Positions 90 to 49,495 of a stretch of 64,000 nucleotides of DNA are shown piece by piece. A model generated the notes under the pieces. That model made no database searches and was not told the origin of the DNA. It saw only the letters and a program-made list of their open reading frames with translations. Every line of letters begins with the position of its first letter. Positions within the stretch are counted from its first letter, which is position 1. Source of the DNA: Anthoceros angustus (Eukaryota; Plantae; Anthocerotophyta); contig VJWM01000117.1 in the NCBI GenBank assembly GCA_010909165.1, forward strand, positions 682,001 to 746,000, read 5' to 3'. The position numbers and the translations under genes are program-made.

Positions 90-2801
90 ATGGCCACAGT
101 ATGGCAACCTGATGCAATGTGGACCCAGCAAATTGGTGAGTGTTCAGGGATTTTACGAGGAGCTCCTGCTCACCTCATCACCGTAGAGAGTCAACTGTTC
201 GGAGACAACCAAGCCTCCAGGTGCAGCGGTTTAAGGATCCCAGCATTTCCACTTCCCAGGAATTGTGTGGGTTGGGAAGGATTTTGCACCGATGGTCGTC
301 GACAAAAGCAGGAGCAGGAGCTCCTCTGGGAACAACTTTTTCTGGACCCTACCATGTGGTGGGACAACAGGCGAGATAAGAAGAGCTCCCGTTCGCCTGA
401 CTTCCGGCGTAAGGGATCTGGCGGCGAGGTCCTGTGGTTGAACAACATGTTCAAGCCAGCTTGGGTGGATGAGCAGCTCGTTACTTTGGATATGCAGATG
501 GGTCATGGTGCTTCTCCTCTTAAGGCGAGCTCACCGGATAAGCCCGAGGCTGGCAGGCGTGCAGAATTGGAAATGGACGTCGAAATGGCTGCAACAGTGA
601 GCACGTTATGCCAGCAGGGTAAGCTTGCTGAGGCCGTTGGAACCCTGGAATCTCTGGCGCAGACAGACTCCCCTGTTTCTCCGTCTCTGCTTTATACTGT
701 GCTGAAGCTGTGTACAGCTAGAAGAGATTTGGTTGTGGGGAAACGACTTCATGACCTCACTGTCAAACTTGGGTACGAGTCGAATGCATACTTGGGCAAC
801 CATCTCTTGCGCATGTATGCATGTGGAGGTAGGTTACAGGAGGCCATGGATGTGTTCACCAGGGTAGGCAAACCGGATGCCTTTATGTGGGGTTCCATAA
901 TTTCCGCATATGCTAAGCAAGGGAAACCAAAGGAGGCCATACAACTTTACCATGAGATGCGCAGGTCAGGTGTGAAGGCGGATGCTCACGTCTTTGCAGC
1001 TGCCCTTCAAGCGTGTGCGTTTGCTGCCGATTTGGAATCTGGCAGAAGAGTGCACTGTGATCTGTTGCATAGTCGTATTTCTCTTAACTTGTTTGTGGGT
1101 ACCTGCTTGGTGGATATGTACGCAAAATGTGGTCAACTGGACGATGCACGCGGGGTTTTTGACAGCTTGGAAACAAAAAATGTGGTGACATGGACGGCCC
1201 TTATAGATGGGTATGCAAAATGTGGCGAACTGGACGGTGCACGTCAGGTTTTTGACAGCTTGCCCACAAAAAATGTGGTGACATGGAATGCCCTGATTGC
1301 TGGGTATACACAGCAAGGGCTCGGTCAAGAGGCACTTCTTCTGTATGGACAAATGGAGCAGGAGGGCCTGACTTTGGCTGACGATGTCACTTTTGCTTGC
1401 CTTCTGAAGGCCTGCGCAAGCACTGGTGCTTTACTGAGAGGCAGGCAGCTGCACTCACAGATTGTGGAAAGGGGACTGCTAGATAACATACTTGTTGGCA
1501 CCTGCCTGGTGGACATGTATGCAAAATGTGGCAAACTGGATGATGCACGCATGGTTTTTGACAGCTTAGCCAGGAAGGATGTGGTGACATGGAATGCCCT
1601 GATTGCTGGGTATACACAGCAAGGGCTCGGTCAAGAGGCACTTGTTCTGTATGGACAAATGGAGCAGGAGGGCCTGAATTTGGCTGACGATGTCACTTTT
1701 GCTTGCCTTCTGAGGGCCTGTGCAAGCACTGGTGCCTTACAGAGGGGCAGGCAGCTGCACTCACAGATTGTGGAAAGAGGACTGCTAGATAACATACTTG
1801 TTGGCACCTGCCTGGTGGACATGTATGCAAAATGTGGCAAACTGGATGATGCACGCATGGTTTTTGACAGCTTAGCCAGGAAGGATGTTGTGACATGGAC
1901 GGCCCTGATATCTGGGTATGGTGCTTGTGATGAAACTCAGCTCGCACGAGGTTGTTTCCGGGAGATGTTAGTGGCCGGTATTCAGCCCGATGATGCTGCT
2001 TTTACTGCCCTTTTAGCAGCATGCAGTCATGGGGGACTGGTGCATGAGGGTCGTGAGCACTTCGATTCCATGACTAAACAGCATGGCATCAAACCTACTT
2101 TTGAGCATTACAATTGCATGATTGATCTTCTTGGGCGAGCAGGCCATCTGGACGAGGCAGAAAACATGGTATTATTATGTGAGGGCCAAGGTAATATTGT
2201 GGGCCTGACGTCTCTGCTGAATGCCTGCAAAAATCACGGGGATCTAGAGAGGGCGAAGCGATGCTTTGAAAGCCTTGTTAGACTGGACCCTCAGCGGGCA
2301 CCCGCATATGTGCTCATGGCCAATGCTTATGCAGATGCAGGTAGGTGGACCGATGCAGAGAGGATTGAAACACAGAGAATGATAGTAGGAGCTAGCAAGA
2401 AACCTGCAGTGTCCACCATTGAGGTGAAGAATGAAGTACATACGTTTGCGGTGGGAGAAAGAAGAAACGATATTGCGCTAAAGGTAGAGAGCACGAATGC
2501 ACGGCTGAAGCAGGAAGGGGGACATGTACCACAGACAAAGTTGGTGTTGAAGCCACTGTCCGAGAAGGAAAAGGAAGATGAGCTTTGTGGGCATGCTGAG
2601 AAGCTAGCCCTGGCGTTTGGTCTCTTGAACACTCCGAGTGGAACTCCTCTGGTGGTAACAAAAAACCTACGCATGTGCAGTGACTGTCACAGGTCCACAG
2701 AGATCATGTCAAGGCTTGAAAAGAGAGACATCGTTGTAAGGGATGCGTACCGTGTTCATCGATTCGCAGCTGGAGGTTGCAGTTGTAAGGGTCGACCGTG
2801 A
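90..2801 (+). CDS. PLS-class PPR protein with N-terminal PDF(OSB)-like motif and C-terminal DYW:KP (GRP-type) domain; candidate U-to-C editing factor (paralog 1)
   Basis: Intronless ORF. P/L/S repeats (VVTWNALIAGY.., DVTFACLLKAC.., LVDMYAKCG..), E1/E2, then KKPAV..HAEKLALAFGL..NLRMCSDCH..CSCKGRP*. The frame is open back to position 3, but the ATG at 90 (MATVWQPD) is the one conserved across paralogs. Confidence 0.92.
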   Translation: MATVWQPDAMWTQQIGECSGILRGAPAHLITVESQLFGDNQASRCSGLRIPAFPLPRNCVGWEGFCTDGRRQKQEQELLWEQLFLDPTMWWDNRRDKKSSRSPDFRRKGSGGEVLWLNNMFKPAWVDEQLVTLDMQMGHGASPLKASSPDKPEAGRRAELEMDVEMAATVSTLCQQGKLAEAVGTLESLAQTDSPVSPSLLYTVLKLCTARRDLVVGKRLHDLTVKLGYESNAYLGNHLLRMYACGGRLQEAMDVFTRVGKPDAFMWGSIISAYAKQGKPKEAIQLYHEMRRSGVKADAHVFAAALQACAFAADLESGRRVHCDLLHSRISLNLFVGTCLVDMYAKCGQLDDARGVFDSLETKNVVTWTALIDGYAKCGELDGARQVFDSLPTKNVVTWNALIAGYTQQGLGQEALLLYGQMEQEGLTLADDVTFACLLKACASTGALLRGRQLHSQIVERGLLDNILVGTCLVDMYAKCGKLDDARMVFDSLARKDVVTWNALIAGYTQQGLGQEALVLYGQMEQEGLNLADDVTFACLLRACASTGALQRGRQLHSQIVERGLLDNILVGTCLVDMYAKCGKLDDARMVFDSLARKDVVTWTALISGYGACDETQLARGCFREMLVAGIQPDDAAFTALLAACSHGGLVHEGREHFDSMTKQHGIKPTFEHYNCMIDLLGRAGHLDEAENMVLLCEGQGNIVGLTSLLNACKNHGDLERAKRCFESLVRLDPQRAPAYVLMANAYADAGRWTDAERIETQRMIVGASKKPAVSTIEVKNEVHTFAVGERRNDIALKVESTNARLKQEGGHVPQTKLVLKPLSEKEKEDELCGHAEKLALAFGLLNTPSGTPLVVTKNLRMCSDCHRSTEIMSRLEKRDIVVRDAYRVHRFAAGGCSCKGRP

Positions 2802-3383: not shown

Positions 3384-3586
3384 GACTCAAGGGCAAGCTC
3401 ACAAGCTAAGACTCAAGGGCAAGCTCACGAGCAAAGACTCAAGGGCAAGCTCACAAGCTAAGATTCAAGGGGCTTGTGAGACTCAAGGGCAAGCTCACAA
3501 GCTAAGATTCAAGGGGCTTGTGAGACTCAAGGGCAAGCTCACAAGCTAAGATTCAAGGGGCTTGTGAGACTCAAGGGCAAGCTCAC
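3384..3586. repeat. Minisatellite (gactcaagggcaagctcacaagctaag.. units, three near-identical ~44-bp copies plus shorter ones)
   Basis: Direct inspection; further short tandem repeats flank it at about 3050-3330 and 3720-3790. Confidence 0.8.
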
Positions 3587-4343: not shown

Positions 4344-7300
4344 CTGGCACACGGTAGTCGCTGATTGCTTTTGTGAGGTGTGCAGACCGGTCACCTCAGC
4401 AGGGTAGGGGCAACCTGGCTCTGTCCAGCATCGCTGAAAACCCTCTCGAACAAGTTCTCCAGGAAGAAACTCCTCCACCAGAAACCTCAGCTGATCACTA
4501 CCTCTCCTATGTCCTCAACATGCATCCAGGCTGGGCCGGCAGTGGATGCCTTCCATGCAAACCATCCTCAACTACAACGCTAATTTCTTGCCTCCCTACA
4601 ATCCAGCTTACATCAGGCCCGTCACCTAAGGATGGGATGCGTAGAGCGCCCTTGATGAACAGAGGAACGGCAGTCCAGTCTATGAGCAAGACTTTGATGT
4701 GATTGGCTTTTCGTCGAAAGACATTAACATGACTTGTCCTCTCGAGAGAGAGAGCCATGTCAGTGGATTGTACTGTGGTCTTAATTTCTATGCTAGATAG
4801 GTCCTCCAAATGATGCATTCAAGCAGTTTTCAACCCGATATATCCTCCAGGCTAACCTGATTTTTAGTCCCTGGCCTGCTAATAAAATTTCACAGTCTAC
4901 CTTGACACAGCCTGGGACGATGGTAACGGCAGATCTGGAAGACCCTTTCCTTCCAGTGCAGGTTAGACCCTTTCCGTTCTGAATCACTAAGGGTTGTGAA
5001 GGCCCAGCTTTTGGACAGTATACCTGCAATGCTGCAGAACACACTCCATATGGAGTCAGCTTTAGGCACCCTGACCTAGCCTAGCTCCAGGCCTTCTTGC
5101 CACCTCTTGACTGCTCTGGTAACGCAAGAAATGGTTTACCAGCTAGGTTCTGGCGGCCTTGTGCTTTTGTAGGTTTGTTAGTTCGTTGGCAGTAGTGACC
5201 TATAGTTGAATTTCTCAGGAAGAAGTACCGGTTGTCAATTTTGGGGCTTCAGATATCGGAAGATCCAGGCGGTATCACACTTATACACATCCTTACGTTG
5301 TTTTTCTGGATGGTGGAAGAAAGTGGCGTTGCAACTTAGCAGGTGCTCTACTGAATGAGGGTACTACACTGGCCTTGTTCAGTGGATACATATCTTCCAC
5401 GAGACCCAGAAAGGTCGTACCTACATTCATTTCATTCAGATAGATTTTCTGTATCATGAAAAGAGGTGGATCCGTTTTAGAGACCTACATATGTCTGTTT
5501 CAGTTTTAACAGGGATAGCTTACCCCTCAGAAGCAAGCAATACTCTGTCGCATACACAATTGAGCATTGGGTAGTCCATCATCATTCTCACGGTCGACCT
5601 TTACAACTGCAACAGCCAGCTGCGAATCGATGCACGCGGTACCCATCCCTTACAACAATGTCTCTTTTTTCAAGCCTTGACATGATCTCCGTAGAACTGT
5701 GACAGTCACTGCACATCCGTAAATTCTTTGTTACCACCAAAGGGGCGCCACTCGGAGTGTTCAAGAGACCAAACGCCAGGGCTAGCTTCTCAGCATGCCC
5801 ACAAAGCTCATCTTCCTTTTCCTTCTCGGACAGTGGCTTTAACACCAACTTTGTCTGTGGTACATGTCCCCCTTCCTGCTTCAGCCGCGCATTCGTGCTC
5901 TCTACCTTAAGCGCAATGGAATCTGTCCTATCTCCTACCACAAAAATATGAACCTTCTCCTTCACCTCAATGCCTGCCACTGCAGGTTTCCTGGCACACG
6001 GTAGTCGCTGATTGCTTTTGTGAGGTGTGCAGACCGGTCACCTCAGCAGGGTAGGGGCAACCTGGTTCTGTTCAGCATCGCTGGAAACCCTCTCGAACAA
6101 GTTCTCCAGGAAGAAACTCCTCCACCAGAAACCTCACCTGATCACTACCTCTCCTATGTCCTCAACATGCATCCAGGCTGGGCCGGCAGTGGATGCCTTC
6201 CATGCAAACCATCCTCAACTACAACGCTAATTTCTTGCCTCCCTACAATCCAGCTTACATCAGGCCCGTCACCTAAGGATGGGATGCGTAGAGCGCCCTT
6301 GATGAACAGAGGAACGGCAGTCCAGTCTATGAGCAAGACTTTGATGTGATTGGCTTTTCGTCGAAAGACATTAACATGACTTGTCCTCTCGAGAGAGAGA
6401 GCCATGTCAGTGGATTGTACTGTGGTCTTAATTTCTATGCTAGATAGGTCCTCCAAATGATGCATTCAAGTAGTTTTCAACCCGATATATCCTACAGGCT
6501 AACCTGATTTTTAGTCCCTGGCCTGCTAATAAAATTTCACAGTCTACCTTGACACAGCCTTGGACGATGGTAACGGCAGATCTGGAAGACCCTTTCCTTC
6601 CAGTGCAGGTTAGACCCTTTCCGTTCTGAATCACTAAGGGTTGTGAAGGCCCAGCTTTTGGACAGTATACCTGCAATGCTGCAGAACACACTCCATATGG
6701 AGTCAGCTTTAGGCACCCTGACCTATCCTAGCTCCAGGCCTGCTTGCCACCTCTTGACTGCTCTGGTAACGCAAGAAATGGTTTGCCAGCTAGGTTCTGG
6801 CGGCCTTGTGCTTTTGTAGGTTTGTTAGTTCGTTGGCAGTAGTGACCTATAGTTGAATTTCTCAGGAAGAAGTACCGGTTGTCAATTTTGGGGCTTCAGA
6901 TATCGGAAGATCCAGGCGGTATCACACTTATATACATCCTTACGTTGTTTTTCTGGATGGTGGAAGAAAGTGGCGTTGCAACTTAGCAGGTGCTCTACTG
7001 AATGAGGTACTACACTGGCCTTGTTCAGTGGATACATATCTTCCACGAGACCCAGAAAGGTCGTGTACCTACATTCATTTCATTCAGATAGATTTTCTGT
7101 ATCATGAAAAGAGGTGGATCCGTTTTAGAGACCTACATATGTCTGTTTCAGTTTTAACAGGGATAGCTTACCCTCAGAAGCAAGCAATACTCTGTCGCAT
7201 ACACAATTGAGCATTGGGTAGTCCATCATCATTCTCACGGTCGACCTTTACAGCTGCAACAGCCAGCTGCGAATCGATGCACGCGGTACCCATCCCTTAC

Positions 7301-7637
7301 AACAATGTCTCTTTTTTCAAGCCTTGACATGATCTCCGTAGAACTGTGACAGTCACTGCACATCCGTAAATTCTTTGTTACCACCAAAGGGGTGCCACTC
7401 GGAGTGTTCAAGAGACCAAACGCCAGGGCTAGCTTCTCAGCATGCCCACAAAGCTCATCTTCCTTTTCCTTCTCGGACAGTGGCTTCAACACCAACTTTG
7501 TCTGTGGTACATGTCCCCCTTCCTGCTTCAGCCGCGCATTCGTGCTCTCTACCTTAAGCGCAATGGAATCTGTCCTATCTCCTACCACAAATGTATGAAC
7601 CTTCTCCTTCACCTCAATGCCTGCCACTGCAGGTTTC
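4344..7637. repeat. Head-to-tail tandem duplication, 1647-bp unit (4344-5990 / 5991-7637)
   Basis: Both copies start ctggcacacggtagtcg and end tgcaggtttc. They are near-identical, with scattered substitutions. Confidence 0.93.
5588..5990 (-). pseudogene. Isolated DYW:KP(GRP) domain fragment copied from the 3' end of paralog 2
   Basis: KPAVAGIEVKEKVH..HAEK..CSDCH..CSCKGRP*. It begins exactly at the duplication junction and has no PPR tract upstream. Confidence 0.85.
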
Positions 7638-9943
7638 TTGTTAGCTCCTGCTGTCGTTCGCTGTGTTTCAATCCTTTCGACATCGGTCCACCTACCTGCA
7701 TCTGCATAGGCATTGGCCATGAGCACATATGCAGGCGCTTGCTGAGGGTCCAGTGTCACAAGCCTTTCAAAACACCGTGTCGCCCTATCTATATCGCAGT
7801 GACTTTTTGAGGCAGTCAGCAAAGACGTCCACCCAACAACATTACTGTGGCCCTCACATGATAATAGCATCTTCTCTGCCTCATCTAAATGGCCTGCACG
7901 CCCCAGAAGATCAATCATGCAGTTGTAATGCTCAAGACTAGGTTTGACGCCATGCTGTTCAGCCATGGATTCAAAGTGCTTGCGACCCTCTTGGACCAGT
8001 CCCTCGTGACTACATGCCACTAAAAGGCAAGTAAAAGTGGCATCATCAGGCTGAATACCGGCAACTAACATCTCCTCAAAACAGGCTAGTGCCTTGTAAC
8101 CTTCATCACAAGCACCATACCCAGATATCAGGGACGTCCATGTCACTACATCCTTTGTGGCCAAGCTGTCAAAAACCGCTCGTGCTTCTTTGAGTTCCCC
8201 ACATTTTGCATACATGTCCACCAAGCACGTGCCAACGAGTAGATTATCTAGCAGTCCTTTTGCCCCAATCTGTAAGTGCAACTGTCTGCCCTTCTGTAAG
8301 GCACCGGCGCTTGCACAGGCCTTCAGAAGGAAAGCTAAAGTAACATAATCAGCCACAACCAGGCCCTCCTGCTCCATTTGTCCATACAGAACAAGGGCCT
8401 CGTGACCAAGTCCCTGCTGGGTATACCCAGCAATCAGGGCCGTCCATGTGACCACATCCTTTGTGGCCAAGCTGTCAAAAACTCTGCGAGCATCTTCCAG
8501 TTCGCCACATTTTGCATACATGTCCACCAGGGAGTTGCCAACTAGTTTGGTATCCAGCAGCCCTCTTTCCACAATCTGTGAGTGGAGCTGCCTGCCCTTC
8601 TGTAAGGCACCAGTGCTTGCACAGGCCTGCAGAAGACAAGCAAAAGTAACATAGTCCGCAACAATCTCGCCCTCCTGCTCCATTTTACCATACAGGACAA
8701 GCGCCTCTTGGCCTTGCCCTTGCTGTGTATACCCAGCAATCAGAGCATTCCATGTCACCACACTTTTCGTGGCCAAGCCGTCAAAAATCTGGCGTGCAGT
8801 TTCCAGTTCTCCAGATTTTGCATACCCAGCTATGAGGGCCGTCCATGTCACCACATTCTTTGTGGCCAAGCTGTCAAACACCCTGCGTGCATCTTCCAGT
8901 TTGCCACATTTTGCATACATGTCCACCACGCAGGTGCCAACAAACAAGTCCAGAGGAATGCCACTGTGCAACACATCCCTGTGCAGTTTCCTGCCAGATT
9001 CCAAGTCGGCAGCAAATGCACAAGCTTGAAGGGCAGCTGCAAACACGTGAGCATCCGCCTTCACACCCGACCTTCGCATCTCATGGTACAGTTGTATGGC
9101 CTCATGAGGTTTCCCATGTTTAGCATACGCGGAGATTATGGAAGACCACATGAAGGCATCTGGTTTGCCTACCCTGGTGAACACATCCATGGCCTCCTGT
9201 AGCCTACCTCCACATGCATACATGCGCAAGAGATGATTCCCCAAGTATGCATTCGACTCGTATCCAAGTTTGACGGTGAGATCATGGACTCGTTGCCCCA
9301 CAACCAAATCCTTCTGAGCTGTACACAGTTTGAGAACAGTATAGATCAGAGACGGAGGGACAGGACAGTCTGTCAGCGCCAGAGATTCCAGGGCTCCTAC
9401 AGCCTCAGTGAGCTTCCCGTGCTCACATAACGTGCTCACGGTTACAGCCGTTACAACGCCCATTTCCGGTCGTGTACGCCACCCAGGCTCAGGCTTCTCC
9501 GGAGAGCTGGACTGGGAAGGAGAGGCACCATGACCCATCTGCCTATCCAAACAAATGAGCTGCTCATCCACCCAAGCTGGCTTGAACATGTTGTTTAACC
9601 ACAAGACCCCGTCGCCAGACCCCTTACGCCGGAAGTCAGGCGACCGGGAGCTCTTCTTATCTAGCCTGTTGTCCCACCACATGGCAGGGTCCAGAAAAAA
9701 TTGCTGCCACAAGCGCTCCTGCTCTTGCTCCTGGCAACGACCATCATTGGAAAATCCTTCCCCACCCACAAATTCTCTCGGAAGTGGAAGTGCTGGTTTC
9801 CTTACACTGCTGCACCTGGAAGCGTGATTGATTCCCAGGGGACTCCCTGAGGTGACGAGGTGAGCGGGAGCTCCTCGTAGAATCCCGGTACACTCACCCG
9901 TTTGTTGGATCCACCATGGATCCAGTTGCCATGCGGTGGCCAT
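7235..9943 (-). CDS. PDF-PLS-PPR-DYW:KP(GRP) protein, paralog 2 (902 aa)
   Basis: Intact intronless ORF MATAWQLD..WWDNRLDKK..PDFRRK..PPR array..HAEK..CSDCH..CSCKGRP*. Confidence 0.93.
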   Translation of the reverse strand: MATAWQLDPWWIQQTGECTGILRGAPAHLVTSGSPLGINHASRCSSVRKPALPLPREFVGGEGFSNDGRCQEQEQERLWQQFFLDPAMWWDNRLDKKSSRSPDFRRKGSGDGVLWLNNMFKPAWVDEQLICLDRQMGHGASPSQSSSPEKPEPGWRTRPEMGVVTAVTVSTLCEHGKLTEAVGALESLALTDCPVPPSLIYTVLKLCTAQKDLVVGQRVHDLTVKLGYESNAYLGNHLLRMYACGGRLQEAMDVFTRVGKPDAFMWSSIISAYAKHGKPHEAIQLYHEMRRSGVKADAHVFAAALQACAFAADLESGRKLHRDVLHSGIPLDLFVGTCVVDMYAKCGKLEDARRVFDSLATKNVVTWTALIAGYAKSGELETARQIFDGLATKSVVTWNALIAGYTQQGQGQEALVLYGKMEQEGEIVADYVTFACLLQACASTGALQKGRQLHSQIVERGLLDTKLVGNSLVDMYAKCGELEDARRVFDSLATKDVVTWTALIAGYTQQGLGHEALVLYGQMEQEGLVVADYVTLAFLLKACASAGALQKGRQLHLQIGAKGLLDNLLVGTCLVDMYAKCGELKEARAVFDSLATKDVVTWTSLISGYGACDEGYKALACFEEMLVAGIQPDDATFTCLLVACSHEGLVQEGRKHFESMAEQHGVKPSLEHYNCMIDLLGRAGHLDEAEKMLLSCEGHSNVVGWTSLLTASKSHCDIDRATRCFERLVTLDPQQAPAYVLMANAYADAGRWTDVERIETQRTTAGANKKPAVAGIEVKEKVHTFVVGDRTDSIALKVESTNARLKQEGGHVPQTKLVLKPLSEKEKEDELCGHAEKLALAFGLLNTPSGTPLVVTKNLRMCSDCHSSTEIMSRLEKRDIVVRDGYRVHRFAAGCCSCKGRP

Positions 9944-20258: not shown

Positions 20259-22862
20259 TCAAGGTCGACCATTACAACTGCAACAACCGGCTGCAAATCG
20301 ATGCACGCGATACCCATCCCTTACAACAATGTCTCTCTTCTCAAGCCTCGACATGATCTCCGTGGAACTGTGGCAGTCACTGCACATGCGTAGATTCTTC
20401 GTTACCACCAGAGGTGTGCCACTCGGAGTGTTCAGGAGACCAAACGCCAGGGCTAGCTTCTCAGCATGCCCGCAAAGCACATCTTCCTTTTCCTTCTCAG
20501 ACAGTGGCTTCAACACCAACTTTGTCTGTGGCACATGTCCCCCTTCCTGCTTCAGCCGCGCATTCGTGCTCTCTACCTTGAGCGCAATGTCGTCTGTCTT
20601 TTCTCCTACCACAAATGTATGTACCTGCTCCTTCACCTCAATGCCTGCCACTGCAGGTTTCTTGTTAGCTCCTGCGGCCGTTCGCTGTGTTTCAATCCTC
20701 TCTACATCGGTCCACCTTCCAGCATCTGCATAGGCATTGGCCATGAGCACATATGAGGTTGCCTGCTGAGGGTCCAGCCTAACAAGGCTCTCAAAACAGC
20801 GTTTCGCCCTCTCGATATCCCTGTGACTTTTGCAGGCAGTCAGCAAAGACGTCAACCCCACAACATTGCTTTGGCCCTCAGATGATAACAGCATCTTCTC
20901 TGCCTCGTCTAAATGGCCTGCACGCCCAAGGAGATCAATCATGCAATTATAATGCTCGATAGTAGGTTGGACGCCGTGCTGTTTAGACATGGAATCAAAG
21001 TGCTTGCGACCCTCGTGCACCAGTCCCTCATGACTACATGCCGCTAAAAGGGAAGTAAAAGTGGCATCATCAGGCTGAATGCCGGCAAGTAACATCTCCT
21101 CAAAACAGGCTAGTGCCTTGTGACCTTTGTCACAAGTACCATACCCAGATATCAGGGCTGTCCATGACACCACATCCTTTGTGGCCAAGCTGTCGAAAAC
21201 CCGGCGTGCATCTTCCAGTTCGCCACATTTTGCATACATGTCGACCAGGCAGGTACCAACCAGTAGGTTATCTAGCATTCCTCTTTTCACAATCTGTAAG
21301 TGCAGGTGCCTGCCCTTCTGTAAGGCACCAGCGCTTGCACAGGCCTTCAGAAGGCAAGATAAAGTAACGTGGTCAGCCACAATCAGGCCCTCCTGCTCCA
21401 TCTGTCCATACAGAAGGAGCGCCTCCTGACCAAGCCCTTGCTGGGTATAGCCAGCAAGCAGGGACGTCCATGTCACCACATCCTTTGTGGCCAAGCTATC
21501 AAAAACCCTGCGTGCATCTTCCATTTCGCCACATTTTGCATACATGTCGACCAGGCAGTTGCCAACCGGTATGGTATCTAACAGTCCTCTTTCCACAATC
21601 TGTGAGTGCAGCTGCCTACCCTTTTGTAAGGAACCAGTGCTGGCACAGGCCTTCAGAAGGCAAGCAAACGTAACATGGGTAGCCAGAACCAGGGCTTCTT
21701 GCTCCATTTGTCTATACAGAAGAAACACCTCTTGACTGAGGCCATGATTTGCGTATCCGACTATGAGGGCGTTCCATGTCACAACATTTTTTGTGGCCAA
21801 GCTGTCAAATACCTGGCGTGCATCTTCCAGTTCGCCACATTTTGCATACATGTCCACTAGGCAGCTGCCAACAAAGAAGTTAAGAGGAATGCCACTTTGC
21901 AACAAATCAGAGTGCAGTTTTCTCCCAGATTCCAAGTCGGTGGCAAAGGCACATGCTTGAAGGGCAGCTATGAAGACATGACCATCCGCCTTCACACCTG
22001 ACCTGCGCATCTCATGGTACAGTCGTATGGCCTCATGAGGTTTCCCATGTTTAGCATGTGCAGAGATTATGGAAGACCACATGAAAACATCCGGTTTGCC
22101 TACCCTGGTGAACACATCCATGGCCTCCTGTAGCCTACCTCGACATGCATACATTCGCAGGATATGGTTGCCCAAGTATGCATTCGACTCGTACCCAAGT
22201 TTGACGGTGAGAGCATGAACTCTTTGCCCCACAATCAAATCCTTCTTAGCTATACAGAGTTTTAGCACAGTATAAAACAGAGACGGAGGAATAGGACAGT
22301 CTGTCAGCGCCAGAGATTCCAGGGCTCCAACAGCCTCAGTAAGCTTCCCCTGCTCACATAACGTGCACACGGTAGCTTCACCCACTTCCGATCCTGTACG
22401 CCGGTCAGGCTCAAGCTCATACAGGGAGCTCGATGTGGAAGGAGAGGCACCATGACCCATCAGCTTGTCCAAAGGAATAAGCTGCTCATCCACCCAAGCT
22501 GGCTTGAACATGTTGTTTAACCACAGGGCCTCCCCGCCAGACCCCTTACGCCGGAAGTCAGGAGAACGAGAGCTCTTCTTATCTCGCCTGTTGTCCCACC
22601 ACAAGGTAGGGTCCAGAAAAAATTGTTCCCACAGATGCTCCTGCTCCTGGCGACGACCATCGCTGGAGAATCGTTCCCCACCCACAAATTTTCTCGGAAG
22701 TGCAACTGCTGGGTCCCTAACACTGCTGCACCTGGTGCCTTGGTTGCTTCCCAGAGATTGACTCGCTGAGGTGATGTGGTGAGCGGGAGCTCCTCGTAGA
22801 ATTCCTGTACACTCACCAAATTGTTGGGTCCACAACGGATCCGGTTGCCACATTGTGGTCAT
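20259..22862 (-). CDS. PDF-PLS-PPR-DYW:KP(GRP) protein, paralog 3 (867 aa)
   Basis: Intact intronless ORF MTTMWQPD..WWDNRRDKK..PDFRRK..GEALWL..HAEK..CSDCH..CSCNGRP*. Confidence 0.93.
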   Translation of the reverse strand: MTTMWQPDPLWTQQFGECTGILRGAPAHHITSASQSLGSNQGTRCSSVRDPAVALPRKFVGGERFSSDGRRQEQEHLWEQFFLDPTLWWDNRRDKKSSRSPDFRRKGSGGEALWLNNMFKPAWVDEQLIPLDKLMGHGASPSTSSSLYELEPDRRTGSEVGEATVCTLCEQGKLTEAVGALESLALTDCPIPPSLFYTVLKLCIAKKDLIVGQRVHALTVKLGYESNAYLGNHILRMYACRGRLQEAMDVFTRVGKPDVFMWSSIISAHAKHGKPHEAIRLYHEMRRSGVKADGHVFIAALQACAFATDLESGRKLHSDLLQSGIPLNFFVGSCLVDMYAKCGELEDARQVFDSLATKNVVTWNALIVGYANHGLSQEVFLLYRQMEQEALVLATHVTFACLLKACASTGSLQKGRQLHSQIVERGLLDTIPVGNCLVDMYAKCGEMEDARRVFDSLATKDVVTWTSLLAGYTQQGLGQEALLLYGQMEQEGLIVADHVTLSCLLKACASAGALQKGRHLHLQIVKRGMLDNLLVGTCLVDMYAKCGELEDARRVFDSLATKDVVSWTALISGYGTCDKGHKALACFEEMLLAGIQPDDATFTSLLAACSHEGLVHEGRKHFDSMSKQHGVQPTIEHYNCMIDLLGRAGHLDEAEKMLLSSEGQSNVVGLTSLLTACKSHRDIERAKRCFESLVRLDPQQATSYVLMANAYADAGRWTDVERIETQRTAAGANKKPAVAGIEVKEQVHTFVVGEKTDDIALKVESTNARLKQEGGHVPQTKLVLKPLSEKEKEDVLCGHAEKLALAFGLLNTPSGTPLVVTKNLRMCSDCHSSTEIMSRLEKRDIVVRDGYRVHRFAAGCCSCNGRP

Positions 22863-23244: not shown

Positions 23245-25847
23245 TCACGGACGACCGCCACAACTGCAACAACCATCTGCGAACCGATGCACACGGTACC
23301 CATCCCTTACAACAATGTCTCTCTGTTCTATCCTTGACATGATCTCCGTGGAACTGTGGCAGTCACTGCACATGCGTAGATTCTTCGTTACCACCAGAGG
23401 TGTCCCACTCGGAGTGTTCAACAGACCAAACGCCAGAGCTAGCTTCTCAGCATGCCCACAAAGCGCATCTTCCTTTTCCTTCTCACCCAGTGGTTTCAAC
23501 ACCAACTTTGTATGAGGTACATGGCCGCCTTCCTCCTTCAGACGGGCACTCGTGCTCTCTACCTTCAGCGCAAGATCGTCTCTTCTTTCTCCCACCACAA
23601 ATGTATGTACCTGCTTCCTCACCTCAATGGTTGCCATTGCAGGTTTCTTGTTAGCTCCTGCTACCACCCTCTGAGTTTCAATCCTTTCTACATCGGTCCA
23701 CCTACCTGCATCTGCATAGGCATTAGCCATGAGCACATATCCAGATGCCCTGAGGTCCAGCTAACAATGCTTTCAAAACACCACGCCCTCTCTAAATCCC
23801 CGTGACTCTTGCAGGCATTCAGCAAAGACGTCAACCCCACAGTATTGGTTTGGCTCTCACATGACAAGAGCATGTTCTCTGCCTCATCTAACTGGCCTGC
23901 ACGCCCAAGAAGATCAATCATGCAATTGTAATGCTCAACAGTAGGTTTGATGCCATGCTGTTCAGCGATGGAATCAAAGTGCTTGCTACCCTCATGGACG
24001 AGTCCCCCATGACTGCATGCTGCTAAAAGGCAAGTAAAAGTAGTATTATCAGGCTGAATACCAGCGGCTAACATCTCCTCAAAACAAGCTAGTGCCTTGT
24101 GACCGTCGTCACAAGTACCACACCCAGCTATCAAGGCATTCCACGTCACCACATCCTTTGTGGCCAAGCTGTCAAAAACCCGGCGTGCCTCTTTCAGCTC
24201 GCCACATTTTGCATACATGTCCACCAGGCCATTGCAAACCAGTATGTTATCTAGCTGTCCCCGTTCCACAATTTGTGAGTGCAGCTGCCGGCCCTGCTGC
24301 AAGGCACCGGCGCTTGCACAGGCTTTTAGAAGGCAAGCGAAGGTAACATGGTTAGGCAAAACCAGGCCATCCTGCTCCATTTGTCCATACAGAACAAGGG
24401 CCTCTTGACCGAGCCCTTGCTCAGTACACCCAGCTATCAGGGCATTCCATGTCACCACATCCTTTGTGGCCAAGCTATCAAAAACCTGGCGTGCATCTTT
24501 CATTTCGCCACATTTTGCATACATGTCCACCAGACAGTTGCCTAACACTACGTCACCCAGCAGTCCTCTTTCCACGATCTGTGAATGCAGCTGCCTGCCT
24601 TTCTGTAAGGCGCTGGTGCTTGCACAGGCCTTTAGAAGGCAGGCGAAAGTAACTTGATCAGCCACAAGCAAGCCCTCTTGCTGCATTTGTTCATACAGGA
24701 CAAGCGCCTGTTGGCCGCAACCATGATTCGCATACCCAGCAATCAGGGCCGTCCATGTCACCACATCCTTCGTGACCAAGCTGTCAAAAACCTGGCGTGC
24801 ATCTTTAAGGTCGCCACATTTCGCATACATGTCCACCAGGCAGTTCCCAACAATCAAGTTAGGAGGAATCCTACTGTGCAACACATCACTGTGCACTTTC
24901 CTGCCAGATTCCAAATCCGCAGCAAATGCACAAGCTTGAAGGGCAGCTACAAAGACGTGTCCATCTGCCTTCACACCTGACCCACGCATATCATGGTACA
25001 GTTGTATGGCCTCGTTCGGCTTCCCGTGTTGAGCATATGCGGAGATCATGGAACCCCACATGAAAGCATCTGGTTTGCCTACCCTGGTGAACACATCCAT
25101 AGCCTCCTGTACCCTACCTGCACATGCATACATGCGCAAGAGATGGTTCCCCAAGTATGCATTCGACTCATACCCAAGTTTGACGGTGAGATCATGAACT
25201 CGTCGTCCCAAAACCAAGTCCTTCTTAGCTGTGCACAGTTTTAGCACGGCATAAAACAGAGGCGGAGAAACGGGGCAGTCTGTCTGCGCCAGACATTCCA
25301 GGGCTCCAACGGCCTCAGCAAGCTTCCCCTGCTTACATAACGTGCTCACTGTTACAACCGTGACAACGCCCGATCCTACAGGCCTGCCAGGATCAGGATT
25401 ATCCGTAGGGCTCAACTTGGACGGAGAGGCACCATGACCCATCTGCATATCCAAAGAAACTAGCTGCTCATCCACCCAAGCTGGCTTGAACATATTGTTT
25501 AACCAGAGAACCTCACCGCCGGACCCCTTACGCCGGAAGTCAGGAGAACGAGAGCTCTTCTTATCTCGCCTGTTGTCCCACCACATTGCAGGGTTCAGAA
25601 AAAGTTGTTGCCACAATAGCTCTTGCTCCTGCTCCTGGCGACGACAATCGCTGGAAAATCCGTCCCCACCTACAGATTCTCTTGGAAGTGGAACTGCTGG
25701 GCTCCTTACACTGTTGCACCTGGGAGCTTGGTTATTTGCCAGAGGTTGAATCCCTATGATGAGGTGAGCGGGAGCTCCTCGTAGAATCCCTGAACACAAA
25801 CCAATTTGTTGGGTGCTTACCGGGTCCGGTTGCCATACTGTGGCCAT
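23245..25847 (-). CDS. PDF-PLS-PPR-DYW:KP(GRP) protein, paralog 4, frameshifted near the E1/E2 junction (pseudogene or sequence error)
   Basis: ORFs 23688-25847 and 23245-23736 join into a full paralog. Several small deletions cluster at ~23735-23780. The protein ends CSCGGRP*. Confidence 0.8.
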
Positions 25848-31760: not shown

Positions 31761-32841
31761 ATGAGCCACCTGTGAATCGCAAGTCGGGTATCGATGGCCA
31801 TTAATGCTAGCTCGTATCATGAGAGTGCCACATCGTCATCCGTTGGGACACAGGGATGGACAGAGAACCAGAAGCACAAGAACTTCCGCGCGGGTTTCGA
31901 GCGGATATCACAAGACAAGACAAGTTCTCAAGAGAGAGAGAACTCAAGGGCCAACAATGCCCCCCAACATGGCTGCCATGGGATTGAGCATTGCCCTGCC
32001 AAGTGCTTCAGAGTCTCAAGCTTTTGCTCACTCCAGGCGTCATTGACATCTCTAGCCTGAATGGCATCCTTCGGAAATGCCGGGATTGGCAATGTTCCCA
32101 TCTTGCACTGGAATACATCGAGTGCCTGGAAGTTCTGGAACACTACGTGCAGCAAAGGTGGCCCGTTGAATTTTGAGTGCTCGCTCACAAGAAACTAAGG
32201 ACCTTGGGCCCGCGTAACTGTAGGAGTAGACATCTCTAACCGAACTTGTGCTACTGCTGCTGCCGCTTTTGATCGTGGTGTTAGCGGAGATGGGGCGGAT
32301 GGATGGCATCTTAGCCGCCGCCGGCTTGCGTTGATGAGCAAATGGGTCCTTGGATATGAAGATGGGCATTCCGCTTGCCTCCGTGCTAAAGGACGCTTGC
32401 CTCACTCCTGGAAGGGAGGACGCAATGTCATTTCGTATTAGGTACTATTCTCTCACAAACGGAAAGACTTGTCGAGATTTTATACAATTCTGGTGTGGCA
32501 AGAGGGAACTAGCGTGCAAAAAATGTGCAAAGTCAGGGGGGAACGGCGGGCTATGTACAGGCCTACTTTACAACATGACACGTCGTTGATCTGGAGATTG
32601 ATGAAACAGACCACGGCTGAGGCCGGAAATCTCTCGAAGAGACAGGGGTTGAAGATTTCTGAAGCCAGTCTTCCATTTCTACGACTAAATATTTGGACAT
32701 GGGTGTTCAGAGTTGCTTATCTCGTTTTTGGTGTCTCTTTTTCTGAGGGTGGTGTGGTCATGCACAGTAGGTACCTAAGCATGTTGCCACGGTCTAAATC
32801 GTTTGTTGGGCGCCTCCTCTTCTGAGAACGGTCCCTATAGG

Positions 32842-35800
32842 ATGACCACAGTATGGCAACCGGACCCATTGTGGACCCAGCAAATTGGTGGGTTTACAGG
32901 GATTCTACGAGGAGCGCCTGCTCACCTCACCTTAAGGAGTCAGCCGCTGGGAAACAGTCAAACCTCCAGGTGCAGCAGTGTAAGCAACCCAGAAGTTCCA
33001 CCTCGGGGAGAATGTTTGGGTGAGGAACGATTCTCCAGCGATGGCCTTCGCCAGGAGCAGGAGCTCTTGTGGCAACAGTTTTTTCTGGACCCTACCATGT
33101 GGTGGGACAACAGGCGAGATAGAAAGAGCTCCCGTTGGCCTGACTTCCGGCGTAAGGGGTCAGGCGAGGTCCTGTGGTTAAACAACATGTTCAAGCCTGA
33201 TTGGGTGGATGAGCAGCTCGTTTCTTTGGATGTACAGATGGGTCATGGTGCCTCTCCTTCCAAGTGGAGCTCTTCGAAGAAGGCTGAGCCTGGCAGGCAT
33301 GTAGGGTCGGAAATGGGCGTCACAAAGGCTGTAACCGTGAGCATGTTATGCAAGCAGGGGAAGCTTGGTGAGGCCGTTGAAGCCCTGGATTCTCTGGCGC
33401 AGAGTGACTGTCCTGTTTCTGTGTCTCTGTTTTATTCCGTCCTAAAACTGTGTACAGCGAAGAAGGATTTGGTTGTGGGGCGGCGAGTTCATGATTTAAC
33501 TGTGAAACTTGGGTACGAGTCAAATACATACTTGGGGAACCATATCTTGCGCATGTATGCATGCGTAGGTAGGCTGCAGGAGGCCATGGATGTGTTCACC
33601 AGGGTAGGCAAACCAGATGCCTTCATGTGGTTTTCCATAATCTCCGCACATGCTAAACATGGGAAGCATTACGAGGCCATACAGCTATACGGTGAGATGT
33701 GTAGGTCAGGGGTGAAACCAGATGGTCACGTCTTTGTAGCTGCCCTTCAAGCTTGTGCATTAGCCACCGACCTGGAATCTGGCAGAAAAGTGCACTCTCA
33801 TGTGTTGCACAGTGATATTCCTCCTGACTTATTTGTTGGTGCCTGCCTGGTGGACATGTATGCGAAATGTGGCGAAATGGAACATGCGCGTGAGGTATTT
33901 GACAGCTTGGCCACAAAAAATGTGGTGACATGGAATGCCCTGATTGCTGGCTATGCAAATCATGGGCTTGCTCAAGAGGCGCTTGTTCTGTATGAACAAA
34001 TGGAGCAGGAGGGCGTGCTTGAGCCTGACCAGGTTACGTTTGCTGGCCTTCTGAAGGCCTGTGCAAGCATTCGTGCCTTATCGAAGGGCAGGCAACTGCA
34101 CTTCCAGATTGTGGAACGAGGACAGCTAGATAACATAGTGTTGGGCACCTGCCTGGTGGACATGTATGCAAAATGTGGCGCACTGGAAGATGCACGCCTG
34201 GTTTTTGACAGATTGGCCAGAAAGGACGTGGTGGCATGGAATGCCCTGATTGGGGGGTATGCCCAGCAAGGGCTTGGGCATGAGGCACTTGTTTTGTATG
34301 GACAGATGGAGCAGGAGGGCCTGGCTGTGGCTGACCACATTACTTTTGCTTGCCTTCTGAAGGCCTGCACACTGGTGCCTTACAGGGGCAGGCAACTGCA
34401 CTCAGATTGGAAAGAGGACTGCTGGATAACATACTGGTGGCATGCCTGGTGGACATGTATGCAAAATGTGGTGAACTGGAAGATGCACCAGGTTTTTGAC
34501 AGCTTGCCACAAAGGATGTGGTGACATGGAATGCCTGATTGCTGGGTATGCAGCAAGGGCTTGGCCAGAGGCGCTTCTGTATGGACAAATGGAGCAGGAG
34601 GGCCTCATTTGGCTGACCATGTTACTTTTGCTTGCCTTCTGAAGGCCTGTGCAAGCACTGGTGCCTTACAGAAGGGCAGGCAGCTGCACTCACAGATTGT
34701 GGAAGAGGACAGCTAGATAACATACTGGTGGTCAATTGCCTGGTGCACATGTTTGCCAAATGTGGCGAACTGGAATGTGCACGCCAGATGTTTGACAGCT
34801 TGCCCACAAAGGATGTGGTGACATGGAATGCCGTGATTGCAGGGTACGCACAACAAGGGCTTGGCCAGGAGGCGCTTCTTCTGTATGGACAAATGGAGCA
34901 GGAGGGCCTCATGTTGGCTGACGATGTTACTTTTGCTTGCCTTCTGAATGCCTGTGCAAGCACTGGTGCCTTACAAAAGGGCAGGCAGCTGCACTCACAA
35001 ATTATGGAAAGAGGACTGCTTGATAACATAGTGCTGGGCAACTGCCTTGTGGACATGTATGCAAAATGTGGTGAACTGAAAGATGCACACCAGGTTTTTG
35101 ACGGCTTGATCAGAAAGGATGTGGTGACATGGAATGCCCTGATTGCTGGTTATGCACAGCAAGGGCTTGGCCAAGAGGCGCTTTTCTTGTATGATCAAAT
35201 GGAGCACGAGGGCCTGGTTGTTGCTGACCAAGTTACTTTTGCTTGCCTTCTGAAGGCCTGTGCGAGCGCTGGTGCCTTACAAAAGGGCCGGCAGCTGCAC
35301 TCACACATTGTGGAACGAGGACTGCTAGACAACATACTGGTTTCCAACTGCCTGGTGGACATGTATGCAAAATGTGGCGAGCTGAAAGAAGCTCGCCAGG
35401 TTTTTGATAGCTTGCCCACAAAGGATGTGGTGACATGGAATGCCTTGATAGCTGGTTGTGGTACTTGTGATGAAGGTCACCAGGCACTAGCTTGTTTTGA
35501 GATGATGTTAGCCGCTGGTATTCAGCCTGATGATGCTACTTTCACTTGCCTTCTAGCAGCATGCAGCCATGAGGGACTTGTGCATGAGGGTCGCAAGCAC
35601 TTTGATTCCATGGCTCAACAGTATGGCATCAAACCTACTATTGAGCATTACAATTGCATGATTGATCTTCTTGGGCGTGCAGGCCAGTTGGATGAGGCAG
35701 AGAACATGCTCTTATCATGTGAGAGCCAAAGCAATACTGTGGGGTTGACGTCTTTGCTGAATGCCTGCAAGAGTCATGGGGATTTAGTGAGGGCGGCCCG

Positions 35801-36341
35801 GTGTTTTGAAAGTCTTGTTAGACTGGAGCCTCAGTGTGCATCTGGATATGTGCTCATGGCCAATGCCTATGCAGATGCAGGTAGGTGGACCGATGTAGAG
35901 AGGATTGAAACACAAAGGGTGGTAGCAGGAGCTAACAAGAAACCTGCGGTGGCGACCATTGAGGTGAAGACGCAGGTACATACATTTGTGGTGGGAGAAA
36001 GCAGAGATGATCTTGCACTGAAGGTAGAGAGCACGAATGCGCGTTTGAAAGAGGAAGGCGGCCATGTACCCCATACGAAGTTGGTGTTGAAGCCACTGGG
36101 TGAGAAGGAAAAGGAAGATGCGCTTTGTGGGCATGCTGAGAAGCTAGCTCTGGCGTTTGGTCTCTTGAACACTCCAAGTGGGACACCTCTGGTGGTAACG
36201 AAGAATCTACGCATGTGCAGTGACTGCCACAATTCCACGGAGATCATGTCAAGGGTTGAAAGGAGAGACATTGTTGTAAGGGATGGGTACCGTGTGCATC
36301 GATTCGCAGCTGGCTCTTGCAGTTGCAATGGGCGACCATGA
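32842..36341 (+). CDS. PDF-PLS-PPR-DYW:KP(GRP) protein, paralog 5, with a longer PPR array; frameshifts at ~34365-34640
   Basis: ORFs 32803-34524 and 34632-36341 plus an intervening frame form one gene with six xMxAKCG S-motifs. It ends CSCNGRP*. The conserved start MTTVWQPD is at 32842. Confidence 0.82.
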
Positions 36342-48438: not shown

Positions 48439-49230
48439 CTAGGACCAGCCATCGGGATCAGCGTCTTCGAAAGTAGAGCCCGCACCGATCTGATCATACC
48501 ACACCTCGCGCGAGCCCTGGGACCCGACCATGTGGCCGCTGTCGTGCCAGCCATTGGCGTAGAGGCCGGTGCGGAACTGGAAAGGGCGGCCATCATCTTG
48601 AACCGTGGTGGCCAGGTTGTAGTTCTCCGTCACCAATTTGCCATCGAACCAGAGCTTGAAGAAGCCCGTGTTGTCGCTCTTCCAGGAGGCTTGAATCACG
48701 ATCTTGTGCCACTTCCCGGCCGAGACAGTGGCCAGATTAGGGAAGTCGGTGACGGAGGCCTCGCACGGCGGGCCGGACTTGACGCGGGAGTAGAGCTGGT
48801 CGCCGCGCAACCACACCATGGTGCTCGGGATGTATTTGCTGCACGGGTAATCGTTGAAGTTGGCGATGAATTGCGCGATGTTGTAGGACTGATCGTCGAA
48901 CTCCCACGCCTCCTGCAAATGGAACGCGAATCCGTAGAACCCCGTCTGCCCGCGCTCGTACACGTTGAACTTCGCCGCCTCGGAGTGGTAGCGGCCGGTG
49001 TAGGACGGGTCGTAGATCTGCGTGCATTTGATGGAAGTGGAGCCCTTGTACACCACGTTGGTTCTTTCCGTCACCGTCCCCTCATGCTCTTGGATGATGT
49101 TGTCCCACCCGGACAGAGTGCCCGTGTTGTGGAACAAAACCTTGGCCTGGATCGAAGTCAGGCCCCGGCATATCATTACTGCCATTGCCAGCAGCTGCAG
49201 CACTTCCAGCTTGAGCACGCTCTCCATCAT
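48439..49230 (-). CDS. Secreted polysaccharide lyase family 20-like protein (endo-beta-1,4-glucuronan lyase-like), 263 aa
   Basis: Signal-peptide-like N-terminus (MMESVLKLEVLQLLAMAVMICRGLTSIQA). Motifs YTGRYHSE, FYGFAF, SYNIAQFIAN, PSTMVW, WKSDNTGFFKLWFDG, FQFRTGLYANGWHD and EVWYD match what I recall of fungal PL20 enzymes. Intronless. Confidence 0.85.
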   Translation of the reverse strand: MMESVLKLEVLQLLAMAVMICRGLTSIQAKVLFHNTGTLSGWDNIIQEHEGTVTERTNVVYKGSTSIKCTQIYDPSYTGRYHSEAAKFNVYERGQTGFYGFAFHLQEAWEFDDQSYNIAQFIANFNDYPCSKYIPSTMVWLRGDQLYSRVKSGPPCEASVTDFPNLATVSAGKWHKIVIQASWKSDNTGFFKLWFDGKLVTENYNLATTVQDDGRPFQFRTGLYANGWHDSGHMVGSQGSREVWYDQIGAGSTFEDADPDGWS

Positions 49231-49495
49231 CTCCACTGAAAGCTGCACTTGTGATTGCGAGAAGGAGAGCTTTGAATTCACGCTGGCTTGGCTTGGCTTG
49301 GATTGGATTGTGAGATTGTGCTGCGTTTGCGGTATTCAGCCATTCTCCCTTAAAAGGACGCAGAGCTACAAGTGGTCGTCATTCAAGTCTTCCGGTCTTC
49401 AGCAGGTCTTCCCTTGTCGATTCAGAACAGACTTGACAGGCCGCAGTGTCGTGTTCTGTTACTCGGAGTGGTACCCACCATACACGTGACTGATC

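Follow-up and report, generated by a model that had tools for sequence, protein, structure and literature searches.

A PDF domain homologous to that of OSB proteins precedes the PPR array of RNA editing factors in a hornwort locus and in other seedless plants

Introduction

The PDF motif is known from plant OSB proteins, where it binds single-stranded DNA (ssDNA) and, in AtOSB1, is sufficient for binding, according to PMC6963530, PMC4166229 and PMC13393729, which cite Zaegel et al. 2006; these papers also state that OSB1 and OSB2 favour ssDNA over double-stranded DNA or RNA. A separate system is formed by the DYW:KP pentatricopeptide repeat (PPR) proteins of the hornwort GRP subgroup; Ichinose et al. 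2022 (PMC9478123), citing Gutmann/Gerke 2020, tie the DYW:KP class to U-to-C RNA editing. DYW:KP domains and U-to-C editing are confined to hornworts, lycophytes, and ferns, and designer GRP proteins without PDF reach 22-26% U-to-C conversion in E. coli (PMC9478123). Here, we analyze a 64,000-nucleotide stretch of the hornwort Anthoceros angustus (assembly GCA_010909165.1, contig VJWM01000117.1, positions 682,001 to 746,000 of the forward strand; hereafter, the window), in which five PPR editing factors of the GRP type each carry a PDF domain in front of the PPR array.

PPR-DYW editors are usually viewed as a PPR array plus a deaminase, and constructs for heterologous assays routinely drop everything upstream of the first PPR (e.g., PMC10482289). 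Among the other components of the editing machinery, MORF/RIP, ORRM, and OZ proteins have documented fusions with one another and with PPRs (PMC13386178). The PDF-PPR fusion is apparently undescribed. A full-text literature search combining the PDF motif or domain with PPR, DYW, or RNA editing returned no such fusion, with Zaegel et al. 2006 and Gutmann et al. 2020 outside its coverage. This agrees with an earlier, sequence-only reading of the same DNA, which knew of no description of the architecture. A search by motif string returned nothing but an Actinomycete paper without relation to the subject, and a broader search on PPR, DYW, OSB, and ferns found only papers without a link between PDF and PPR. 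Moreover, a 2026 paper on OSB evolution does not mention the PDF-PPR fusion, and a kingdom-wide survey from the same year, on domain fusions of editing factors (PMC13386178), mentions neither OSB nor PDF.

Results

Five tandem PPR paralogs share a conserved N-terminal module

Using tblastn of the first gene (c1) against the 64-kb window, we found a tandem PLS-class PPR family composed of five full-length paralogs, c1 to c5, and one orphan C-terminal fragment. A six-frame scan with the regular expression WW[DE]N[RK] detected exactly five occurrences in the window, one in each paralog. The corresponding modules lie at 324-491 (+) in c1, 9545-9712 (-) in c2, 22467-22634 (-) in c3, 25449-25616 (-) in c4, and 33067-33231 (+) in c5. 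The first of these was identified by alignment, regular-expression scan, phmmer, and a fold match to AtOSB1-4, and those of c2, c3, and c4 by translation, alignment, and regular-expression scan; the c5 module is one residue shorter, and R replaces K in one of its near-invariant columns. Alignment of the N termini showed a block of ~57 amino acids, LW.Q.FL.P..WWDNR.D.KS.R.PDFRRKGSG.E.LWLNNMFKP.WVDEQL, which is near-invariant in all five proteins. It begins after a presequence of ~77 amino acids, and the first PPR follows about 35-40 amino acids beyond it. Thus, scan, translations, and alignment agree that all five paralogs carry the same module at the positions given by the sequence-only reading.

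To compare the module with its surroundings, we summed differences over the 10 paralog pairs by the Nei-Gojobori method. The pN/pS ratio was 0.20 in the module (84 non-synonymous and 104 synonymous differences), as compared to 0.72 in the N-terminal 73 amino acids (presequence), 0.90 in the linker, and 0.33 in the PPR array; the 10 pairs are non-independent, and the contrast is large. The PDF module is therefore under purifying selection and, as had been proposed from the letters alone, is better conserved than the linkers adjoining it. Within the otherwise fast-evolving presequences, the block GILRGAPAH (e.g., 144-176 in c1) is invariant in all five paralogs and could serve as a signal for import or processing.

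The genes themselves differ in integrity. On the forward strand, c1 (90-2801) is intact and encodes 903 amino acids in the order presequence, PDF, PLS-PPR array, E motif, and DYW:KP domain with a GRP end, as seen from its open reading frame (ORF), translation, and Pfam matches. The paralogs c2 (7235-9943, minus strand, 902 amino acids) and c3 (20259-22862, minus strand, 867 amino acids) are likewise intact, each with an uninterrupted ORF. The full-length c4 (23248-25847, minus strand) contains a single frameshift in its E region, near 23751-23763, so that its DYW part continues in another frame to 23248. In c5 (32842-36341, plus strand), two long ORFs (32803-34524 and 34632-36341) are present, and the frame is broken between about 34300 and 34700. 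Thus, the earlier count of five full paralogs holds with respect to length, while only c1, c2, and c3 are uninterrupted.

The module is homologous to the PDF domain of OSB proteins

We next searched for relatives of the module by phmmer, with a 70-amino acid segment of it as the query and 1.84 billion cluster representatives as the target. At E<=1e-3, the search returned 538 proteins, of which 115 also passed E<=1e-10; several repeats were present in many of the proteins. One of these (P0004) is a Chenopodium quinoa "protein OSB3, chloroplastic/mitochondrial-like", which contains a Pfam SSB domain followed by four C-terminal PDF repeats (E 2.3e-43). In an alignment of 111 diverse modules, D and R were invariant, and W, W, K, P, D, F, L, W, P, and W were present at a frequency of at least 90%. 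All 12 of these invariant or near-invariant columns are kept in c1 to c4, and c5 differs by the single K-to-R change.

The fold pointed in the same direction. An AlphaFold2 model of the module based on the 111-module alignment (pLDDT 89.5, pTM 0.75) consists of a helix, three short strands, and a second helix. When this model was compared by Foldseek with the Swiss-Prot part of the AlphaFold database (AFDB), the sole matches at E<1e-3 were Arabidopsis OSB1 (residues 180-246), OSB2, OSB3, and OSB4, in each case at the PDF region. The superpositions, in which both sides are predicted structures, gave TM-scores of 0.64-0.82, root mean square deviations of 0.9-1.6 Å, and 37-43% identity. The AFDB clusters also returned OSB-named proteins predicted to have the fold of the module, and a shape search of the ESM Atlas returned OSB clusters together with three PPR/DYW clusters (127, 57, and 63 members) sharing this fold. 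Taken together, the phmmer relatives, which include a named OSB3, and the exclusive match to OSB1-4 in Swiss-Prot identify the window module, at the level of sequence and predicted structure, as a true PDF domain homologous to that of OSBs, in line with what the sequence-only reading had recognized. Pfam detected only PPR, E, and DYW in c1 and no SSB or OB-fold domain. Because this domain is absent, the window proteins fall outside the OSB family and share with it the PDF domain only.

The domain is poorly covered by the family and structure databases. No Pfam-A model matched any of the 111 PDF modules, and PHROGs gave nothing consistent for them. No relative was found in the PDB by sequence, by Foldseek, or by a wide VIA-align search (best Z 4.1). 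The order of helix, three strands, and helix recalls a dsRBD fold, yet no dsRBD was matched. An ESM Atlas feature search with the PDF model (window 297-518) returned only sub-threshold phage clusters (score 0.73), and the shape search placed two clusters of hypothetical tailed-phage proteins near the PDF fold (TM 0.62-0.65). A phage relationship was unsupported in BFVD Foldseek, PHROGs, and Pfam, and a phage link as the origin of the fold is a weak lead. PDF repeats were also seen in long models that are neither OSB nor PPR, including a Striga "Interactor of constitutive active ROPs 2" (P0040), a Coptis kinesin-motor protein (P0060), and a 719-amino acid protein with nine repeats (P0002). Fused gene models or additional PDF architectures may explain these cases.

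The window paralogs are DYW:KP factors of the GRP subgroup

Pfam analysis of c1 detected PPR (1.7e-83), E_motif (1.8e-14), and DYW_deaminase (4.4e-32). The deaminase domain (PF14432) corresponds to amino acids 811-901, or 2520-2792 on the plus strand, and contains HAE and CSDCH, with a KPAVS box just upstream and a terminal GRP just downstream. The deaminase part of c1 to c3 carries KKPAV (the KP box), HAE, and CSDCH, and their C-terminal end is KGRP, but NGRP in c3. In addition, the DYW domain of the window scores higher against P0138, a GRP-ended protein, than against PG-type domains. The paralogs thus combine a PLS-PPR array, an E motif, and a DYW-family deaminase in the manner of PLS-PPR DYW:KP factors of the GRP subgroup. 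The KP box, HAE, CSDCH, the GRP end, and the Pfam DYW_deaminase match all bear out the class that had been assigned to these C termini at first sight.

PDF-PPR fusions occur in a liverwort, Sphagnum mosses, lycophytes, and ferns

An N-terminal PDF followed by PPR repeats was found in 15 of the top 150 phmmer matches. The sources of these 15 are three ferns (Ceratopteris, Adiantum, and Pteridium) and two lycophytes (Selaginella and Diphasiastrum). To extend this set, we performed a whole-protein search with a Selaginella PDF-PPR (P0133), which yielded 119 further PPR proteins. A PDF hidden Markov model detected the domain in 26 of them and not in the other 93, among which were all 10 gymnosperm proteins. 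Because this sample is biased toward relatives of a PDF-PPR, no frequencies can be read from it. Searches with a word index, limited to the PDF region of full-length PPRs, gave nothing useful.

Ten of the 26 are complete and carry a canonical DYW:PG domain (PGCSWIEV or PGRTWIEV, with the near variants LPDCSW in P0186 and LGRTW in P0230). Seven of these come from Diphasiastrum (P0172, P0186, P0198, P0202, P0211, P0247, and P0261), two from the liverwort Calypogeia fissa (P0175 and P0196), and one is a metagenomic, bryophyte-like protein (P0230); the C terminus is DYW in nine of them and DSW in P0230. Further fusions lack a DYW domain. Sphagnum species have a 953-amino acid PDF-PPR (e.g., P0299) with a gene model ending in the E1 motif, and several Selaginella PDF-PPRs (e.g., P0133) end in or just after this motif. 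A hornwort-like PDF-PPR, P0138, has a DYW:KP domain with a GRP end, and some PDF-PPRs contain two or three PDF copies (P0003, P0162, P0174, and P0231). At the DNA level, we found frame-split PDF-PPR loci in Diphasiastrum (L001, 4001-7400) and in a Logan sample (L002, 3045-6001, and L003, 404-3807). In all three, a frame change separates the part with PDF and the first PPRs from the rest, which ends in a PG-type E/DYW; an intron, an error of assembly, or decay may account for the change. Because these loci are frame-split, we used the intact annotated proteins as the evidence for PG-type fusions.

Altogether, PDF occupies the same position on PPRs in five further lineages. In a tree of the modules, those linked to PPRs clustered, with 9 label changes as compared to 41.5 in shuffles. 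This is compatible with a single origin of the PPR-linked modules, with the caveat that 65 columns resolve little. The nearest neighbors of the window modules on this 65-column tree were the fern PDF-PPRs P0086/P0156 and P0095. In public databases, PDF-PPR proteins carry only PPR or hypothetical-protein names. The fusion is old: it is present in hornwort, liverwort, moss, lycophytes, and ferns, on PG-type as well as KP-type editors, and it has spread with the PPR expansions.

These data bear directly on the proposal, made in the sequence-only reading, that the fusion is a feature of reverse (U-to-C) editors. This part of the proposal fell, as intact PDF-PPR-DYW:PG proteins exist in Diphasiastrum and Calypogeia and E-ended PDF-PPRs in Selaginella and Sphagnum. 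Furthermore, since DYW:KP domains are confined to hornworts, lycophytes, and ferns (PMC9478123), the liverwort and moss PDF-PPRs fall outside the range of this class. The same reading had taken an equal frequency of the motif on C-to-U (PG-type) PPRs as evidence that would count against it; what our data establish is the presence of the motif on PG-type proteins, not an equal frequency. The PDF domain is thus not a determinant of the editing direction and says nothing specific about U-to-C editing.

Other features of the window

The orphan fragment found by tblastn lies at 5591-5995 on the minus strand. It matches amino acids 769-903 of c1 with 88% identity, has no PPR or PDF part, and is probably the DYW:KP remnant of a sixth paralog. 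All five paralogs share the start M(A/T)T.WQ, and in c2 to c5, in-frame stops lie just upstream of it, while the c1 ORF continues upstream. Because the stretch of c2 to c5 homologous to this extension (3-89) contains in-frame stops, we rejected the extension as coding; the start of c1 is at 90, and 3-89 is probably non-coding. Directly 3' of the c1 stop, there are tandem repeats (2794-2958; 6.8 copies of a 24-nucleotide unit) that start inside the last codons, and a second repeat, with 3.5 copies of a perfect 44-nucleotide unit, is located further downstream (3435-3586). The window also contains an intronless ORF of 280 amino acids (48439-49281, minus strand) with a Pfam match to Polysacc_lyase (PF14099, E 2.6e-65).

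Discussion

The homology of the PDF module, its predicted fold, its fixed position N-terminal to the PPR array, and the purifying selection acting on it are established, and they set the frame in which its role has to be considered. A PPR array binds RNA in parallel, with its N terminus to the 5' side, and the deaminase is located at the 3' end of the footprint. Because PDF directly precedes the array, it is expected to border the footprint on its 5' side, where it could add non-specific single-strand affinity and hold the upstream RNA unfolded. It might also, or instead, bind ssDNA exposed at the nucleoid and so concentrate the editor at the place where nascent transcripts emerge. In both cases, PDF would be an accessory outside catalysis. 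With moderate confidence, we favor the view that PDF on PPR editors is such an accessory module, providing sequence-independent binding of single-stranded nucleic acids and/or tethering to the nucleoid. As designer GRP proteins edit without it, PDF is not part of the catalytic requirement.

Several observations weigh against this accessory role. Since OSBs prefer ssDNA over RNA, as reported in PMC6963530, PMC4166229, and PMC13393729, a role on the RNA side is not the obvious one. Given the U-to-C conversion by designer GRP proteins without PDF, the contribution of the domain could be small or limited to the conditions in the organelle. Two of the five window copies, c4 and c5, are frame-broken. 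With regard to transcription, a transcript comparison with 6,000 letters gave a few exact, short contig pieces of c3 and c4, in run X1 only, and two raw RNA-seq runs labeled as another species gave zero reads at >=95%. The contigs are short pieces common to the gene family, and their many apparent joints connect different paralogs and look like assembly chimeras rather than introns. GRP genes are under-represented in transcriptomes (PMC9478123).

An alternative, which we regard as unlikely, is that PDF serves protein-protein interaction or oligomerization, either pairing with OSBs or other PDF proteins or dimerizing the editors, and recruits them to the nucleoid or the editosome without contacting nucleic acids. 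This would fit the description of AtOSB2 as a tetramer (PMC6963530), the two or three copies present in P0003, P0162, P0174, and P0231, and the occurrence of PDF in varied contexts and in tandem, with as many as 13 copies. In contrast, the literature attributes ssDNA binding to PDF itself (PMC6963530, PMC4166229, and PMC13393729), and the conserved W, W, R, K, F, and W residues are aromatic or basic, which are typical properties of residues that stack or contact phosphates.

PDF might also be a functionless passenger, the relic of one old exon-shuffling event that was spread by duplication or retroposition of PPR genes. The tandem expansion of the window PPR family with two of five copies decaying, as well as the many PPR editors without PDF (93 of the 119 relatives, including all 10 gymnosperm proteins), could be read in this way. 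However, the selection signal of the module contradicts this explanation and makes it very unlikely: its pN/pS of 0.20 is not only far from the 0.72-0.90 measured alongside but also below that of the PPR array (0.33), and the near-invariant residues are kept across bryophytes, lycophytes, and ferns. Least probable of all is an adaptation of reverse (U-to-C) editors, for instance by tethering an aminating enzyme to the transcription bubble or by allowing it to act on DNA, because, despite the presence of PDF on all five GRP-type window paralogs and on the hornwort-like GRP protein P0138, the domain is found on intact DYW:PG editors and E-ended PPRs, the liverwort and moss cases lie outside the DYW:KP range, and designer GRP proteins perform U-to-C editing without it (PMC9478123).

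If the accessory role is extended, PDF might be a built-in helper of PLS-PPR editors in seedless land plants, a sequence-independent single-strand clamp or nucleoid anchor. It would do part of the work that falls to separate MORF/RIP and ORRM proteins in seed plants, in whose lineage the PPRs would have lost it. We offer this only as a speculative idea that is rather improbable as it stands. If true, the native editors of hornworts, ferns, and lycophytes, including those for U-to-C, may need PDF for full activity, and heterologous assays with trimmed N termini have been discarding it. More generally, PDF is a concrete variable to consider wherever native editors of these plants, whether U-to-C or C-to-U, show poor activity in assays away from the organelle. 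A selected N-terminal PDF adds a third functional part to the array and the deaminase, and the fusion connects the editing machinery with the nucleoid and ssDNA-binding toolkit. It is present in many bryophyte, lycophyte, and fern editors, and domain surveys may overlook it because no Pfam model matches the module.

Compared with known systems, the PDF of the window proteins is most similar to that of Arabidopsis OSB1-4, with which it shares a module of ~50-70 amino acids and the signature LW..F..P..WWDNR..K....PDF.[HR]K..G..LWL.....P.WV. The arrangement differs, as PDF in OSBs follows an OB-fold/SSB-like domain on its C-terminal side, often in several copies, while c1 to c5 carry a single copy N-terminal to the PPR array; furthermore, OSB is a DNA-maintenance protein, and in the window PDF is joined to an RNA editing enzyme instead. 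The hornwort DYW:KP GRP factors resemble c1 to c3 in the PLS-PPR array, E motif, KP box, HxE, CxxCH, and C-terminal GRP, but their published descriptions and the designer proteins begin at the PPR array, with an N-terminal PDF unmentioned in the literature searched. The PDF-PPRs of other seedless plants (e.g., P0156 from Ceratopteris) have the same plan of a presequence, one to three PDF copies, a PLS-PPR array, and an E motif, with or without DYW. Except for P0138, those named here are of the DYW:PG (C-to-U) type where DYW is kept, and the rest end in or just after E1 or are truncated. Last, the MORF/RIP, ORRM, and OZ helpers of seed-plant editosomes are, like the role proposed here for PDF, accessory and non-catalytic parts of the editing machinery, yet they have no relation to PDF in sequence or fold.

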